Counted from the first letter of the stretch, positions 18,623 through 44,159 are shown. The stretch: DNA of 64,000 nt from Podarcis filfolensis (GCA_964270895.1 OZ185437.1); one strand, 5' to 3'. Notes: a model not told the origin generated them from the sequence alone. Numbers and translations are program-made.

Positions 18623-18718
18623 GGCATTCTTGGGTCAGGATTTGCATTAAAAGTACAGGAACAGCATCGTCAGAAACATTTTGAAAAAAGAAGGAATCCC
18701 GCTGCCAGTTTAATTCAA
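18623..18718 (+). CDS. KCNQ5: KCNQ5 exon 7 (end of S6, start of helix A)
   Basis: ctccag|GGC...CAA|gtaagt; 96 nt; [32 protein letters not shown]; ends in phase 0. Confidence 0.98.
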
Positions 18719-19503: not shown

Positions 19504-22475
19504 TACATGCACACAACCAGTATGTTCTCTGTTAAACTCTTGGCTACAATCCACCACTTACTGCTGAATTCCTGTTGATGTCAATAGATGCTGTTTGTGC
19601 TTGACATGTCTCATGTTCAGTGCTTGCATAACACACTGTATGTAGTGTTTTCAAGAAATAATCACTCCAGAAGACCTAGAAAGATACATACTGTGTGATA
19701 TTTTGCATGACACAGTTTACAATATAGTTTTCTATAAAAAGCCAGAACTGATAAATAAATGTCAGATTAAATTATGGCACAGCACCATCGCCCACATTCA
19801 ATTAATTATTAGTAGTGGGTCTCTGACACTGTGCCAGGGGGTAAATGCATTCAGTTTGAAGGAAGAGACCTCTGTCCAAACAATTCACTACAACAGTTTG
19901 AATGATTGATCACAATAGCTGTTGGCCTAAAATTATGGGCACCTTCCCAGTGGTGGCATTGATGTGTAGAAGGAATCAAACAAAGTAAATCGAAATGTTA
20001 GCATATTTGATGTTTTAAACAGCTGCTTCATTTAATTACATTTCCTTTTAGTGCAATAGATTTCACTTCGTTGCTGTTTTGAATACTGCATGTTGTGTTG
20101 CTTGGCTTTTTTCACACCCAGTTAAATCAAGGTTTATATCCAAAGCGATTGTCTAGTATGCTGCCTGAGCTATTATTTAAGAGCCTAGAATCAATTCTCC
20201 ATTCTTTGTGTGTGTGTGCGCGCACACACATTATTCCTTTGAAAACCAGATTTGAAAACCTCTGAAAAACTTTGGCAGAACTGATTCCTGAATTATGCTG
20301 GATCATGCCCACAGAGTACAACTGCCAAATGTCTCTTTGGGGATCAGTAAGTCATTTCCTCAGCTTGTCATTTATGCTTGCCTTGGAAGTTGAGGTCTGA
20401 GCAATCACAGAGCATTCCCGCTCCCCAAACAGAATGATAGCTGGGAGGAAAGGGAACCTATCAAAGCTGTTATGCTGACATGACCACTGGACAAGTTCCA
20501 GGCTGTGCACAGTTCCTGGCAAGCATGGGAGCCTCCTTTATACATGGTTTGTAACAACATGGGAGGGATGCATATTGCTGTCAAAACCTCAACAGGGTTA
20601 ATATTAAAATGTGTGGAGGGAATGTGTGAAGGAGGGAAGAGATAGGAATTCACTTTCTATATTTGCTGAATTGCAGCTATATACTGTTATGAGCCAGCAA
20701 CTGTCAATTAAGAGCCTGCATGAATATGGACTTTACAAACTGCAGGTTCATCCCCACACTTGAGAATGGCAGCCCAAGCAGTGACGGTGAGCCGCCATCT
20801 CACTTTCTGCCAGGGTTAACTAGTAGTGTCAATTTAGCCCAGGATTCACACCTGATGAACTCAAGACAGAGTAGTTACAGACAGCCTCCTCTGCCTGAAG
20901 TCTCTGCTCCCCAAGGACCAGTGCAGAAATACCACAAAGGGCTTTTAATGGTATCAGACATGGCCTAAAGATAAGAAGACACCACCACCCCCATCCCACA
21001 TACAGAAACTTACCAGACTGGCAGCTGAATCTTAAACCAACACTAACTCCACCACACCTGAGGGGAACAGGCAACGTAGGGGGAGCAAGGCATATAGAGT
21101 TCTGCCCTTCAACACTTCACCACCATATCACTCACTACTCTTGCCTGAGACCTTGGTGCCACCCAGTCAAACAAATGCTGCAATGCAGTAGCACTATCTT
21201 GCATCCCATGAGCAGAGCAACACATGGCATATATCTGATGCCGGCTGGAGTGCATAGCCTGAGCTGCCGGCTCGTACATTGGGAGAGGGCAACTAAATGA
21301 AAGAGCCATGCCAACCAAAAAGCAAGGATTGTTCTGCCAATGCACCAGGTCCTAATAGGAGCGGCAGAGGGGTGAAGAGGGACTGCCAGACACAGCCTCA
21401 TGGTACTGGAAGACCTGGCCATATTGATTGGGGCTCAACTTTGTCTTAGAATTGCATAAGGCATCCAATGATGAAGGCCGTTATTTTTTGCACAGATCTA
21501 AATCTCTTGATTTGTACTAAAATGAATAGTAAGAATGTGAAATTTGAAAAATTGGGACTAGAAACCACTATCCTAGAAATATAACCTGTTCATACGATAT
21601 ATTATTAGCTTTATGATATGCTTAGTAGTGTACAGACATAGTGTCGTGGTTGAAAGTGTGAGCAGGGAGCTTCCTAGTTCAAAATCTTACCTCAGCCATG
21701 AATTTACAACATGGCCTCAGTATTACTGAGAATAATGTATGCAAAATACCATATAAAGTTTATCATCACACTAAAAGATGTGTTCTCCAAGATAATTGTA
21801 TTTGGTATTAATCTTATTTATTGTAATATTTTCAAATGCTGATTACCAGGATAAACAACTAACAGTTGTTGCTAAATACCTCCAGGTTTATGAGAATGCA
21901 ACTTGATATTGACTATAATGCACTGTTAAAATCATTTGAGATAAATGTCAAATGCACACACACACAGAGAGAGAGCAGCAAAATAGTTTCTTAAAGTTGT
22001 GGTAGATAAGTCCTTCTATTTTATTGAGCAACCCAAGCTACTGTAGGATTGAATACAGAACTCTGCTTGGCAGCCCCTAGCACGACCTTCCAAAAGGTTG
22101 GGAGACCCTCTGTAACATCATGGGAGGTGGGTTGGGGGCTGCAAGGGAATGGAGGGAAATCAAGTGAAAACTGCCCCCACCCCTTCTCTTCCTTCAGCAG
22201 GAAACCTTTGCTGGATTCCAGTTTCTCCACAAATGAAGGGAGCCCTTCCATTGAAATTGTGACTTTCTTGTGTACAGTTTTCTTGTGAATTTTAATACCT
22301 AACCAAATCTTCACTGCACTCTGCAAGCATAACCATACGGAACTAATTATTTAAGCCAAAGTAACAGGTATTGGTTCCAGCTTGAACAAAATGCAGATTT
22401 TCCATAGCGATAACAATGCTTTCATTTCATATACTGTTGGCTCCTTTGTGCTTTCTGTTGTTTCCTTTTCACAAG

Positions 22476-22564
22476 GCTGCTTGGTGGTTTTATGCTACTG
22501 ATTGCAGACGAACAAACCTGACAGCCACTTGGCGATATTATGAAAGTATTCTTCCACCCCTTAG
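22476..22564 (+). CDS. KCNQ5: Candidate alternative KCNQ5 exon 8a (KCNQ2/3/4-type helix-A exon), probably mutually exclusive with 8b
   Basis: tttccttttcacaag|GCT...CTTAG|gcatgt; 89 nt, phase 0 to 2, open frame AAWWFYATDCRRTNLTATWRYYESILPPL(R). 19/30 identical to the human KCNQ4 segment as recalled ([30 protein letters not shown]). Needs a GC donor; no transcript evidence available. Confidence 0.8.
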
Positions 22565-22704
22565 GCATGTATCAGTGCTACAAATGACACAAAAAAGCCA
22601 TGACTTGTATTGGTATACTAATATGCTTTTCTTTTCTTTTTTGTTTCATCCCCTGCTCCCTCTTGCCTTTATTTCCCTTTCTTCATCATATATCCTACAT
22701 GTAG

Positions 22705-22800
<96 letters not shown>

Positions 22801-23847
22801 TAGGTAAAAATTTGGCAGCTGGTGCTGTACTTGATGTCTGTTTTGAGCTTATAAAAATCAGTGTGTGGTTTTGTCTTGTTGTCCCCCCCCCCCTTTTAAT
22901 GCCATTCATTAAGGAACTTAGGTAGCAAACTGAGACAATTACACATCCTCCAAACATAATGACAAATCGGATTCCCATTTTCTTTTGTTTCTGAGCCATT
23001 ATTACAACAAAGCAATAGAAGACTTTTTCTGCCACCAGGCCCTCAAAACCCTGCTGGAAGTTAATCTTCTAATAGCATCTAGGCAAAATATTACCTGTGT
23101 TGGACTCAGTTAATGCTAATTCATCCTACTTCACATGGTTGGTGATATATTATTCCAATCTCTAGGGCACCACACTGGCTACCCCTGCATTATTTATTGT
23201 CGATTTCTAGCAGCTTAGACCTGCTGACTTCCATTGGTTTCTCTCAATCTAATTGTGCTTAGAGTTAGAAGAAAAAGCAGGCGTAAAAACAGCATGTAGG
23301 TCAAAGGACCACACTAATTTATACCAGCAGAGGTTTTGTCTTGTTACTATTCAGATTAGGAAAAGACTGAATGAAACCCAACCAACTGGTTAATTCACCA
23401 CAAACAATTTGCTGCTTCTTTCAGTTTGCAGTACTGTGCTTTTTGCATAAAGCTGCTGTGTTTTTCTTTTTCTTTGTAATAAACAGAAGCTTAAATGTCA
23501 CCATGTTATCCTTACTGTCAATTACATTCCACATGTTTCCTCTTCCTGTGAGAAACCTGTGTAGGAGGGTGTTAGTAATAAAACTGATACGGCTGTTCTT
23601 CATTCCCATTAGATGGGTCATACTGATATGAATCCTGGGAAACATCTATTTTCAGTGGGAGAGAAATGCGTAGCTTTCTACTTCTATGTGTAATGGAAAT
23701 GCAGATAACAATATCATTTCATCATATATGTTCCTTGTTAGATAATCATAGTTAACAAAGAAATAGTCCCTATTCATTTGAGGGCAGAATTTGGTTGAGA
23801 GAAACATGCCTATTGCAGAAATTCCATATTAAAGAATAATCAAAATA

Positions 23848-24072: not shown

Positions 24073-25269
24073 TACTGCTTTTTAATTACAAACACACACA
24101 CAACAATATCAATTGGGCATCCTTCTAGGAATTATGACAACAAAATCATGCTTGTATTATCTACATTAGAAAGTGTTTTCCAGAAGAAAGTTCTAGAAGT
24201 TTGGAATGGATTTTAGCATGTTTTCATATGGCACAGCAATTCTTGTTATTTCTTTTGCTTTAAAAACTGTCACCAAACCATTTTGAGCTGTAAGAATAAG
24301 TGAAGATGGAAAACAAATAGATTCTGAACAAGAATCCTATACACTCCTAAATTCCTTACTCTCTCTTCTAGAGCTGAGACTTTGGTGTGTACTACCTTTC
24401 TTACAGAAGGGAACTGAAAGTTATGTGGAGTTCTCAAGACCCATTTGTTGTGGCTAAACTATAATTGTTACTGCTATTTTGCCTAACAACAATAAAATAT
24501 GGGGAGACATGCAACTGTTTAAAAAGACAAAGGGTGGCAGAGAAAGATTATGTTTCCGTCTAGTTTGTCTTCTCTTCCATTTTCCCCACTTGGATGGGCA
24601 CAGAAAGCTGATTTGTAAATTTCATCTAATTGGCAGGCACAAAGCTCATGATTGCTCCACTGGAACTCCTAAAAGCTTCAAAATAAAAATATTTTGTTCT
24701 CAGAGGCCAGAAATGTTGGTTTTAATTGTGTTTTAGACAATCACTGTTTAGACTTAAGAGTTATCTAAGTTATGTAAACAGTTAAGTCATAGTCTGACTA
24801 AATATATTACAGTACACTTCTGGCCAAGGAAAAATATTATCTGACATCAGTCCTCTGTGTGAAATCTCAGGTCCCAGTTATTAAGTCAAATGTGCTCCAT
24901 TAAAACAGATATCTGCATCTAATAATAAGCCTACAGCTTTCTGTTATCTGTATATCAGCACCTGCATTTTGCCTAAATAAGTGCTTTGCCAACTCATTCA
25001 ATAATGGTATGTACTAAGTGCATTTAGCATGCCTTGAGGTGCCGTTCAAATATTTTTTCTGATGTCACGGTAGTTATATTAGTCCCTGCTTGAATGTTTT
25101 GTGTTTGCTTTATAAAATGTTATTATTAAATGTATTAATTTGATTAACACAGCCAGCTGTGATATAGCGTTTATCTAATAATGTTTGTAACCACATCATA
25201 ATCGGTACTGCCAGCATAACAAATTTCTTTCTTCCCAAACTTTCTCTCTTCCGTTATTGACACCTGAAG

Positions 25270-25296
25270 GAAAGAACAAGGGGAAGCATCTAGCAG
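25270..25296 (+). CDS. KCNQ5: KCNQ5 27-nt cassette microexon (exon 9)
   Basis: cacctgaag|GAAAGAACAAGGGGAAGCATCTAGCAG|gtttgt; (K)KEQGEASS(S), phase 2 to 2; matches the known KKEQGEASS insert. Confidence 0.93.
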
Positions 25297-27581
25297 GTTT
25301 GTGGTGTTTCTATGCATATAGTTTTAAAAATAAAAAACGTTGTTTGAGAATGGGTGCAGATCTCTGTGAATGCGGGGTCCAAATATATTGGCACAGTATT
25401 GACTAAAAAAGCTCATGCTCAGATCCAGTAATGGGAAGGATTTAAGTACAGAATTCTAATTTTTCTAGACAAAATAATATTGTGAGAACGGAATACTGCT
25501 CAGTATTATCCACAGATGCCTAGCAACATTTGCATATTTAATAATGGATTCTGCAGGAGTATGAACCTAGCACTATACTTCAATGGATAACAGAATGATT
25601 GATCAAGACTTGAAAGACATTTGTCTCTTACTATCCAGGATAATGAATTAGGGCTAGATGAATCATCCCTTGTGACACATGAAAACACCTCTTAGAAACG
25701 TCAGTAATTAAGTGGTTTATAAATAACTGAAATACCTAAACAAACAAGCAAACAGTCTGAGGAAGGAGGGTGATGTCTTGTATATGATGGTTTTCCCCAG
25801 TACAACTTTTTAAATTGACACTTCTGTATATAAATTCAAAACTAATTTAATTACTTAATAATTTAAATCACCAACTGACATAACTTTTAACTAAATAGTG
25901 TAGTTGTGATCGATTGAAAATACTACATATATGACTAAAACCTGAATAGTGGATGAACATTTTCACACACTTTGAGTTATGTCATTGTCATAACCTCCAG
26001 ATCCATGCCTTCTGCATATTCACTCCTATTGCTGTCTAAACTCACAGAAGCAAACATCATTTGACAATCCTAACAACCACACAATCTGACTGCCTAGAGA
26101 GAGTGGGACCATGCTGGGTAGGCTGCTGTCATTTCAAATTTCCCTGCAGGTGAACATGCCACTATTCTATATTATAAGAAAATAGTCATCTGGTTTTGAG
26201 GATGAAAAGGGAATTTTGAAGGATCCCATTATATGAAGCAGGATAAACACTGTCAGGCATTTATGCACTGGCAGGATTTCTGATGTAAGTAGGGTCCACA
26301 TAATAAAAATCGAAGGCCAAGGTCCATCTAGTCCAGTATCCTATTTTCAACAGTGACTGGACAAGTATCTCTGGAAGATCACAATCACAGCATGAAGGTA
26401 TTCCTTTTGCTCCTTACATGTGGTAATCAAAAGTATGTTGCCTCTGAACATGGTTCCATTTAACTATCATGCTTAATAGCCAGAGATGTACCTATTTTTA
26501 TACATAAATTTGTATGATTTTTTTAAAGCATCTAAGGCAATTCATAAAGCACAATGGAATCTCTTTCACTGTGATTCAATTCCACACTGGTCTAGTAACG
26601 TTTGTATGTCAGAAATACATAAGCAAGGTGAATGGCCCTTCTCACATGGACCTCATCCACCTTGAGATCCCAAGATCTCTATTCCAAGACATAAGAGACA
26701 AGTTAGAACCTCTTTGTTTTACTTTTGGGCTTGCACTTTTCCTCTTTTTTCAACATGGCCAATGATTGGGATAATGGGAATTGTAGTCACAACATCTTGA
26801 GGGCCATAGGGTCTGCACCCCTCCTCTATTTCTTAAAGCAATTTTAGTCATCTACGGCTCTTAATGTACTGGTAAGGTATACTGCAAATACAAGATCAAA
26901 GTTTCCTTGGATACATTACTCCAAATGTGAAATGCATTACTTAAAAAGGAGGCTATGGACCATCAAAGGGAAACTGCATATGCAGTCAGAGCTTTCCCAC
27001 TGCTGATTAGAGAAAGGAAATGTTCTCCTTTTGTGTAGGAGTTGGTTGTTTCATCACCAGCAACAGGAATCCTGTTATACTCTGGATCCCAGTCAGAAAT
27101 TTCAAGATTGGGTGAGAGCCACTTCTCCTAACAGCTGCCAGAACCAATTTCATATTGTTCTCTTTCACATGTCCTCCTAGTGGTGCAGCAATAAAACTGC
27201 TAGCACATTTGCAAAGTTTAGCAGGGTTCAGTATGGTTTCAAGTTGGATAAGGGAACACTTGTTGAGATTCCTCCATTGCAAGCAGATGGATTTAGTTGA
27301 TCCTTGGGGTCACTTCCAAATGTACAATTCCATGATTCTATGTATATAATTAGCCTGACTGCTAATGCACATTTAATCCATTGTCTAGAAGTAAGTAAAA
27401 CTGATATATAAACAAAACTTGGTCAGCACTGTTGCCACACTCAAGTTACTACCATAACTATTAAAAACTAAAACAGTGTTTTAAGATATTCCAAAAGGCC
27501 TGTGGAATTTACTCACAAACCTCCCACTAACTTTCATGGAGCTAATATTTAAGATATTTCAAGATCTTGAAGCATCTTTGC

Positions 27582-43208: not shown

Positions 43209-44159
43209 GTTCAATCCATAGAGTCAAAATTAGACTCACTGCTAGATATCTACCAACAGGTCTTGAAGAAAGGATCTGTATCTGCACTGACTTTGGCTTC
43301 ATTTCAAATGCCAACTTTTGAATGTGATCAAACTTCTGATTATCAAAGCCCTGTAGATAGTAAAGATTTGTCTAGCTCTGCCCAGACCAGTGGATGTGTA
43401 TCCAGATCAGCCAGTGTCAACATGCCATGTGGCCTACAGCTTATACTGACACCAAATGAATTTAACCCTCAAGCTTACTATGCGTTTAGTCCAACTATGC
43501 ATAGTCAAGCCACACAGGTGCCAAATGATGGACCTGCAACTCTATCAGCTAATAATGCACTAAACCAAATACACCAGACATCTAAGCCAACAACACCTAC
43601 AACGTTACAGATACCACCTTTTTCATCAGTAAAGCATAACAATAGGCTGGAGCCTATACATGTTATTCCCGTGAGCACACAGGAAAATACTTCTGATGTC
43701 ACCGCTTGCCTTGTTGCTTCAAATGATAATGGAAAAATTGCACAGTCCAGTGTGACAAAGGATCTCTCATGGAGAAAAAGCCTTGATACAGAAGGGGAAC
43801 CCTTGGTCTCAGTGAAACCAATAGTACAAATGGATATAGGGAAATCGCTATCTGTTCAAAACCTTATACAGTCAACAGCTGAAGAACTGAATGTACAGAT
43901 TTCTGGTAGTGACACCAGTAGCTCAAGAGGTAGTCAAGAATTATACAGCAGATGGAGGGAATCAAAATTATTTATAACTGATGAAGAATTGGAAGCAGAG
44001 AGAGAAAATGAGACTTTCGAAGGCATTTCCCACCCATTAGTGGAAACGACTCTCTCTACAGACTCTCTAAGGACTGGAATGTCAAGATCATCTCAAAGCA
44101 TTTGCAAGCCAGGGGATGGTGCAGATGCTCTCAGCCTGCCTCATGTCAAACTTAAATAG
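43209..44159 (+). CDS. KCNQ5: KCNQ5 terminal coding exon 14 (rest of helix D, distal C-terminus)
   Basis: ccaccag|GTT; 316 codons + TAG; begins [23 protein letters not shown], ends [11 protein letters not shown]; includes the ankyrin-G-binding-like SKLFITDEE segment. Confidence 0.98.

Follow-up and report, generated by a model that had tools for sequence, protein, structure and literature searches.

The window analyzed here, a 64,000-nucleotide stretch of DNA from Podarcis filfolensis, is identified by six-frame reading as the KCNQ5 (Kv7.5) gene on the + strand, and its exons and splicing signals are collected in Table 1. Exon 7 is the upstream partner for either of two adjacent homologous exons, termed here 8a and 8b, which have the same phases and share the W-R-x-Y ... 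A-T-W pattern in the helix A that each specifies; by this reading they are tandem-duplicated exons for the calmodulin-binding helix A of Kv7.5. The product of 8a is AAWWFYATDCRRTNLTATWRYYESILPPL followed by the AG of an Arg codon, and the product of 8b is 31 residues followed by the AA of a Lys codon, the latter being the canonical KCNQ5 helix A. The helix A encoded by 8a is KCNQ2/3/4-like and resembles other Kv7 proteins, and the 8a type is the only one present in representative matches having a KCNQ4-like context and in lamprey "member 4-like" proteins. In local alignment the 8a/8b block is ∼81% identical to the locus of the skink Lerista over 857 nt, and the intron around this island is either 69–71% identical to Lerista or unalignable. 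This divergence, together with base composition, indicates a squamate-like reptile.

Table 1. Positions of KCNQ5 exons and of the splicing signals between and around exons 8a and 8b, numbered from the first nucleotide of the window. A slash marks an exon-intron boundary here and in the text.
Feature	Position	Strand	Remarks
KCNQ5 pore exons	near 9.7 and 16.0 kb	+	six-frame reading
KCNQ5 exon 7 (32 residues)	18623–18718	+	ends ...NPAASLIQ, phase 0, donor GTAAGT
8a acceptor region	22440–22475	+	compact pyrimidine tract; ends CACAAG, ACCAG in relatives
Exon 8a	22476–22564	+	89 nt, phase 0 to 2, 3' end ...CTTAG
8a 5' splice site, GC type, AG/GCAUGUAU	22565–22572	+	GCAUG at 22565–22569
8a-8b spacer	22565–22704	+	140 nt; begins GCATGTAT, ends TGTAG
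AG-free zone, 105 nt	22598–22702	+	pyrimidine tract 22623–22702
Predicted distal branch-point sequence UACUAAU	22616–22622	+	branch A 22621, for 8b acceptor
8b 3' splice-site AG	22703–22704	+	first AG 3' of predicted branch point
Exon 8b	22705–22799	+	95 nt, phase 0 to 2, donor GTAGGT at 22800
Conserved intron block 3' of 8b	22800–22850	+	GTAGGTA...TGGCAGCTGGTG; 71% invariant columns (squamates)
Exon 9, 27 nt	near 25.27 kb, inside 25260–25303	+	six-frame reading
Exon 10	from 35133	+	six-frame reading
Last KCNQ5 exon	43263–44159	+	six-frame reading

To collect relatives, proteins were searched with the open reading frame spanning 8a and the spacer; the matches comprise one GenBank model, from Lerista edwardsae, and three ORFs that are read-through translations of genomic sequence. 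The comparison set consists of the window, four other squamate-like loci, and four teleosts (Gouania, Aplochiton, Albula, and Caranx). Exon 8a is 89 nt long with an intact frame in eight of the nine species, the exception being Caranx with 88 nt. Among the five squamate-like loci the proportion of invariant columns is highest in 8b (96%), followed by 8a (80%), the spacer (62%), and the sequence immediately 5' of 8a (54%). The 8b protein is the same in all five loci, and the exon is almost frozen, with pN/pS values of 0–0.11; values for 8a are 0.17–0.54 among squamates and 0.12–0.40 in deeper comparisons, and changes in its second half are mostly synonymous (pS 0.17 vs pN 0.04).

Synonymous divergence of 8b between fish and squamates is also low, with pS of 0.25–0.40 against 0.6–0.9 for 8a, and the intron directly 3' of 8b is recognizable as far as Albula and Caranx, suggesting nucleotide-level constraint beyond coding. 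In the window itself, 8a reads AAWWFYATDC where the four relatives read A[ST]WRFYSTD[TAS][SR] (differences at 22485–22487 and 22494–22508), a change in which Trp (TGG) replaces the Arg (CGG) of the IQ-type W-R-x-Y motif. This replacement could indicate weaker calmodulin binding or relaxed constraint in this species.

An exhaustive representative search recovers teleost KCNQ5 proteins in which KEQG... comes immediately after a helix A of the 8a type, and a full-length search gives more than 100 teleost KCNQ5 entries with the 8a-type helix A. Many teleost RefSeq proteins that come from the KCNQ5 locus and contain the 8a-type exon bear the name "subfamily KQT member 4", and in Poecilia reticulata "member 4" isoforms and a "member 5 isoform X5" lie on one contig; the name "member 4" seems to have been prompted by the KCNQ4-like helix A.

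Splice signals of the spacer in squamates and teleosts

A preliminary description of this DNA placed a GC donor at the end of 8a, with the pentamer GCATG as the first five bases of the intron, and both assignments are borne out at the same coordinates: the exon ends in AG, and GCATG opens the spacer. That description also called the site the only phase-compatible donor for 8a. The GC site is indeed phase-compatible, but it is not the only one, as three GTs (22607, 22613, and 22643) likewise leave the frame open and end the exon in phase 2; these are poor donor matches, and an exon ending at any of them would depart from the conserved length of 89 nt. A further GT at 22569–22570, nested four bases into the spacer, fits 8b in phase but not exon 9.

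As in U2-type GC-AG introns, GC stands at +1/+2 where the reading frame needs the exon to end. Teleost proteins read ...LR/KEQG across AG/GC, and because the junction ...R/KEQG in Gouania and Aplochiton needs an exon end at AG/GC, the annotated models use the GC donor. Cross-species conservation of the GC donor, which the preliminary description had named as a check, extends from teleosts to squamates, with AGGCATGTATC invariant in nine of nine species (five squamate-like and four teleost loci).

Having C at +2 and U at +4, the 8a donor is by its sequence weak and non-canonical. It matches U1 at -2, -1, +1, +3, and +5 to +8, and these matches would compensate in part for C at +2 and U at +4; judging from the known 5' end of U1, pairing with U1 could by itself explain conservation of the donor through +8. 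The U at +4 is invariant in all nine species, although A would pair better with U1, and as the sole sign of extra constraint on the donor it may be taken as a hint. GC-AG introns are associated with alternative splicing, and GC donors usually keep the consensus A at +4. The 8a donor resembles U2-type GC-AG introns in its GC at +1/+2 and its otherwise U1-complementary positions, but differs from the usual GC donor in the U at +4, which creates GCAUG.

A U12-type donor at the nested GTATC, as in the JNK-type mechanism of U2/U12 incompatibility, was considered and rejected: GTATC begins only after the first 4 nt of the intron and does not fit exon 9 in phase, squamates read GTATCA rather than RTATCCTT, and the 8b acceptor has a long pyrimidine tract and lacks the U12-type branch site TCCTTAAC. 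In the lamprey Petromyzon marinus, two RefSeq generations of the "member 4-like" protein (P0031/P0158 vs P0159/P0160) read ...PTLRHEQGD and ...PTLRKEQGD, respectively, which hints that the single helix-A exon of the lamprey may have a similarly ambiguous donor.

On the acceptor side, the branch-point motif, AG-free zone, and U/C tract with UCUU motifs described earlier are likewise present. The A of TACTAAT at 22621 is separated from the donor by 56 nt and from the final base of the intron by 83 nt, AG occurs in the spacer only at 22574, 22596, and 22703, and the tract from 22623 to 22702 is 82% pyrimidine, with four TCTT motifs in the AG-free tract. There are six AG-free runs of at least 100 nt in the 64-kb window, making up 1.1% of its bases, and the chance expectation for TACTAAY is 0.015 per 140 nt. 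Within the AG-free zone TACTAAT is the only heptamer that matches TACTAAC at five or more of seven positions; reading by eye finds weaker yUnAy matches nearer the 8b acceptor, where the pyrimidine run is poor (65% in the last 20 nt). The motif had also been put forward for cross-species comparison, and ACTAAT is invariant in eight of the nine species, with the variant motifs TACTAAA and CACTAAC in Gouania. The AG-free length is 101–105 nt in squamates, 79 nt in Gouania, and 165 nt in Caranx, and by reading Aplochiton and Albula also have a long AG-free stretch. An AG-free zone of 100 nt or more is a sign of a distant branch point and of an alternative exon, and the distant-branch-point class is enriched for alternative and mutually exclusive exons and has regulatory sequence between branch point and exon (PMC1431707). 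With its AG-free tract, a sole strong branch motif at the upstream edge of that tract, a poor pyrimidine run at the acceptor, and the first AG downstream as the splice site, the predicted 3' splice-site region of 8b fits this class, and UACUAAU presumably serves as its branch point.

In all five squamate-like loci 8a is 89 nt long and open, GCATGTAT and TACTAAT are invariant, the branch A lies 55–57 nt from the donor and 79–83 nt from the acceptor, and the spacer is free of AG from about intron position 33 to the acceptor. Spacer length is 135–140 nt in squamates and 135–1281 nt over all nine species. The four teleosts all have the tandem pair with AG/GCATGTATC, and in each an ACTAAT-type motif stands at the upstream edge of an AG-free tract of 79–165 nt. 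Gouania has an 89-nt 8a, the donor CAG/GCATGTATCA, and a spacer of 1281 nt with TACTAAA at -83 and CACTAAC at -60. The GC donor is followed by a spacer of 236 nt in Aplochiton (8a 89 nt, TACTAAT 100 nt from the donor), 199 nt in Albula (8a 89 nt, TACTAAT 60 nt from the donor), and 240 nt in Caranx (8a 88 nt, CACTAAT 68 nt from the donor). Insertions between donor and branch motif consist of a (CCCT)n microsatellite in Aplochiton (L009 44360–44425) and ∼1.1 kb of AT-rich repeats in Gouania (L008 46480–47560); despite these upstream insertions, the segment from branch point to acceptor is free of AG in all species. In the eight-species alignment A2 the mean column identity is 51%, and three blocks of the spacer are invariant, namely AGGCATGTATC at the donor, ACTAAT, and the acceptor. 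The squamates and Albula further share GACTTGTATTG...TTACTAAT.TGCTTTTCAATTTTTT. The invariance of the donor and of ACTAAT amid a drifting spacer is strong comparative evidence that both features are functional.

In Caranx melampygus (L007 3960–4060) the 88-nt 8a puts the conserved GC donor out of frame, and use of the nested GT four bases on gives a 92-nt exon and restores the frame with exon 9; the GenBank model for this locus continues into the intron. Conserved RNA structure, whether of the selector/docking type or as a donor-branch hairpin, was considered and rejected. In RNAalifold the sequences flanking the branch motif pair with the donor, but this pairing has no compensatory change and contains pair-breaking substitutions, and the donor-branch hairpin has single-sequence z values of -0.5 to -0.9 and is absent in one species. 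A strong local hairpin formed by CAGGCAUG and CAUGCCUG over the donor is found in Caranx only (z -3.5).

Probable exclusive use of 8a and 8b and its possible control

The spacer probably separates alternatively used helix-A exons and carries two splicing devices. In the first, the opening bases of the spacer would act as a GC donor, so that 8a is joined to exon 9 and 8b is removed within the intron. In the second, UACUAAU (A22621), the ∼80 nt of pyrimidine-rich AG-free sequence, and the AG at 22703–22704 would serve to join exon 7 to 8b, and 8a would be removed. Products with both exons or with neither would be eliminated by nonsense-mediated decay (NMD), and the donor-branch spacing of 55–57 nt would add at most partial hindrance to the joining of 8a to 8b. 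Exon 8a is presumably expressed in this species.

The proposal that 8a and 8b are mutually exclusive agrees with annotated teleost isoforms, which use one or the other. In the RefSeq set of Gouania willdenowi, isoforms X1 and X3 carry 8b and isoforms X2 and X4 carry 8a at the same position, each followed by KEQGD. Because the lengths of 8a and 8b are both 2 mod 3, each productive mRNA takes one exon: inclusion of both (184 nt) shifts the frame and brings a TGA into frame inside 8b (...CTC ATT TGA by direct reading), and skipping of both shifts the frame as well. Comparison among species thus lends good support to the GC donor, to the predicted distal branch point, and to a mutually exclusive layout, and frame incompatibility (89 + 95 nt) accounts for exclusivity in every species. 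Of human mutually exclusive clusters, 60% are frame-incompatible (PMC5740500).

The preliminary description had looked to steric exclusion, for which it called 56 nt borderline, and had proposed that PTBP1 could silence 8b and RBFOX could silence 8a, giving a tissue or developmental switch. In such a scheme exclusivity would be enforced because U1 and U2 complexes have no room to assemble together; as a whole it is unlikely. The steric criterion used for human mutually exclusive exons is <50 nt (PMC5740500), and the threshold for OGDH is ∼50 nt (PMC7969005). Spacing is just above this threshold in seven of the nine species, being 55–57 nt in the five squamate-like loci, 60 nt in Albula, and 68 nt in Caranx, and the squamate spacer is short and size-stable (135–140 nt), resembling OGDH intron 4a (PMC7969005), all of which would suit a steric contribution. 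Nevertheless, every measured spacing exceeds ∼50 nt, and the distances of 100 nt in Aplochiton and ∼1200 nt in Gouania show that insertions between donor and branch point are tolerated. Since these two lineages have broken the spacing and kept the pair, with Gouania isoforms still exclusive, steric hindrance is not the general enforcer, and the claim does not stand in that form; it could be a partial, lineage-specific addition.

Nor do the regulators named in that scheme find conserved sites of their own. TCTT counts in the tract are 4, 2, 2, 0, 1, 5, and 0 by species, and CTCTCT occurs in no species' tract, so that a conserved PTB platform is not evident. The QKI core ACUAAU is present and conserved, but it also matches the optimal SF1/U2 branch consensus, and direct reading of the window finds no second UAAY half-site within 20 nt of it. 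In favor of RBFOX, the GCAUG at the donor is invariant in nine of nine species and is the only conserved GCATG in the whole region; the base before it is G, not the U of UGCAUG, and because it coincides with donor positions +1 to +5 its conservation is confounded by donor function and is not assignable to RBFOX. Inclusion of an exon is usually favored by a GCAUG in the intron that follows it, and by this positional rule RBFOX bound between the two exons would favor 8a and repress 8b, the opposite of the earlier proposal. In Albula (L010 5561–5570) and Caranx (L007 4278–4287) UGCAUG occupies positions -8 to -3 of the 8b acceptor, CTGCATGCAG/TGTG, and the other species have CTGCACGTAG, CTACATGTAG, or CTGCACATAG at this site, as if an RBFOX-type site had decayed.

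A bolder use of the same pentamer, and one we regard as quite doubtful, is that the invariant GCAUG has been a dual-purpose weak 5' splice site for >400 million years, which RBFOX can occlude or assist, and that together with the distal branch point and pyrimidine tract of 8b it makes a compact two-signal switch of helix A between types of excitable tissue. Spacing of 55–68 nt (seven of nine species) would then partly block an in-frame product of a 93-nt 8a with 8b, which would escape NMD.

Two further explanations bear on the status of 8a itself. Exon 8a might be an unspliced relic in this lineage, the spacer being kept solely as the extended 3' splice-site region of a constitutive 8b. Consistent with this, protein word searches yield no spliced tetrapod 8a fragment among their matches, and the best 120 matches of the full-length search are all teleost, with no tetrapod isoform containing 8a, although tetrapod isoforms may hide inside 90% or 50% clusters, which makes this blank weak. 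The replacements in the window (AAWW in place of A[ST]WR, DC in place of D[TAS][SR]) point the same way, as do squamate pN/pS values for 8a only moderately below 1, and KCNQ5 is missing from the supplements searched (Hatje 2017) and the main text (Abascal 2015) of catalogues of human mutually exclusive exons. A branch-point region alone, however, would need neither donor nor frame to be kept, and in each of the five squamate-like loci 8a retains its 89 nt with the frame open, the acceptor intact, and the GC donor unchanged, with the mostly synonymous change in its second half noted above. In a search of sequencing runs, none recorded as RNA matched the 8a-8b stretch; some contig sets labeled "RNA?" hold 0.26–0.37 of the sampled words of 22440–22830, where one exon can account for ∼0.18, which is suggestive only. 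Loss of 8a from splicing is considered improbable.

The other explanation, that a 93-nt 8a is joined in frame to 8b through the nested GT at 22569 to give two tandem helix-A segments, is very unlikely indeed. It draws on the Lerista edwardsae GenBank model lerEdw1_001320 (P0004; L006 16596–16920), the only tetrapod gene model found, which reads ...ILPSLRH-CVWRSY..., as well as on the GT at +5/+6, which is invariant because it belongs to GCATGT, and on Caranx, where use of the nested GT brings exon 9 back into frame. The Lerista model, however, is a truncated computational prediction of 138 aa, whose 93-nt 8a is probably an annotation artefact of the GC donor. In addition, the nested site CAT/GTATCA lacks G at -1 and G at +5, the branch A is merely 51–53 nt from it, and teleost RefSeq isoforms are exclusive. 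Alternative use of the two helix-A exons through the GC donor and the predicted distal branch point remains the preferred reading, and the preliminary description is partly supported: its architecture holds, as does exclusivity in teleost annotation, its steric mechanism does not, and the roles of its named regulators are conjectural.

Relation to known exon pairs and significance

The literature search found no paper describing the KCNQ5 helix-A exon pair, and its closest counterparts are OGDH 4a/4b and the tropomyosin and actinin pairs. Like KCNQ5, OGDH 4a/4b (PMC7969005) are ancient tandem-duplicated mutually exclusive exons with a short intron between them, and in both genes the downstream exon has a very long pyrimidine tract, an AG-free zone, and, by prediction in KCNQ5, a distant branch point or points near the upstream donor; in both, too, amniotes have a short intron of stable size, and some anamniotes a longer one. 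The two differ in that OGDH branch points have been mapped, at 25–41 nt from the donor (30–46 nt in frog and fish), whereas those of KCNQ5 are predicted, at 55–57 nt (60 to ∼1200 nt in teleosts), and in that the upstream donor is GC in KCNQ5 and GT in OGDH.

Alpha-tropomyosin exons 2/3 and the alpha-actinin NM/SM exons share with KCNQ5 a long pyrimidine tract at the downstream exon and a distant branch point, predicted in KCNQ5. For these pairs, experiments have demonstrated that closeness to the upstream donor prevents the two exons from being joined (Smith & Nadal-Ginard 1989; Southby et al. 1999; both as cited in PMC1431707); repression by PTB is known, and regulatory sequence lies between branch point and exon. 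KCNQ5 differs from them in its larger distance, at which any such block would be hypothetical, and in UCUU-type PTB motifs that are not conserved. Exons with AG-exclusion zones (Gooding et al. 2006, PMC1431707) resemble 8b in having the best branch motif at the upstream end of the zone and in being alternative; the 105-nt AG-free zone of 8b, known here from sequence, is at the low end of that class. Also close are teleost KCNQ5 isoform pairs such as those of Gouania, database models from the same gene with 89/95-nt exons, a GC donor, and exclusive use. Teleost spacers are 199–1281 nt long as against 140 nt in the window, and no comparable annotated tetrapod isoform is among the matches.

Because the pair and its GC donor are already implicit in teleost RefSeq entries, and because the layout matches known cases, the advance is incremental. 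KCNQ5 adds a further deeply conserved mutually exclusive pair with a predicted distant branch point, and the case is instructive in that its spacing lies just above the steric threshold and two fish lineages broke the spacing and kept the pair. The GC donor, the U at +4, the branch A, and the spacer length provide cis signals that can be mutated to force one isoform. Helix A is an IQ-type calmodulin-binding segment that governs the assembly and gating of Kv7 channels, and a swap of the helix A exon would yield, from one gene, two Kv7.5 channels differing in calmodulin behavior.
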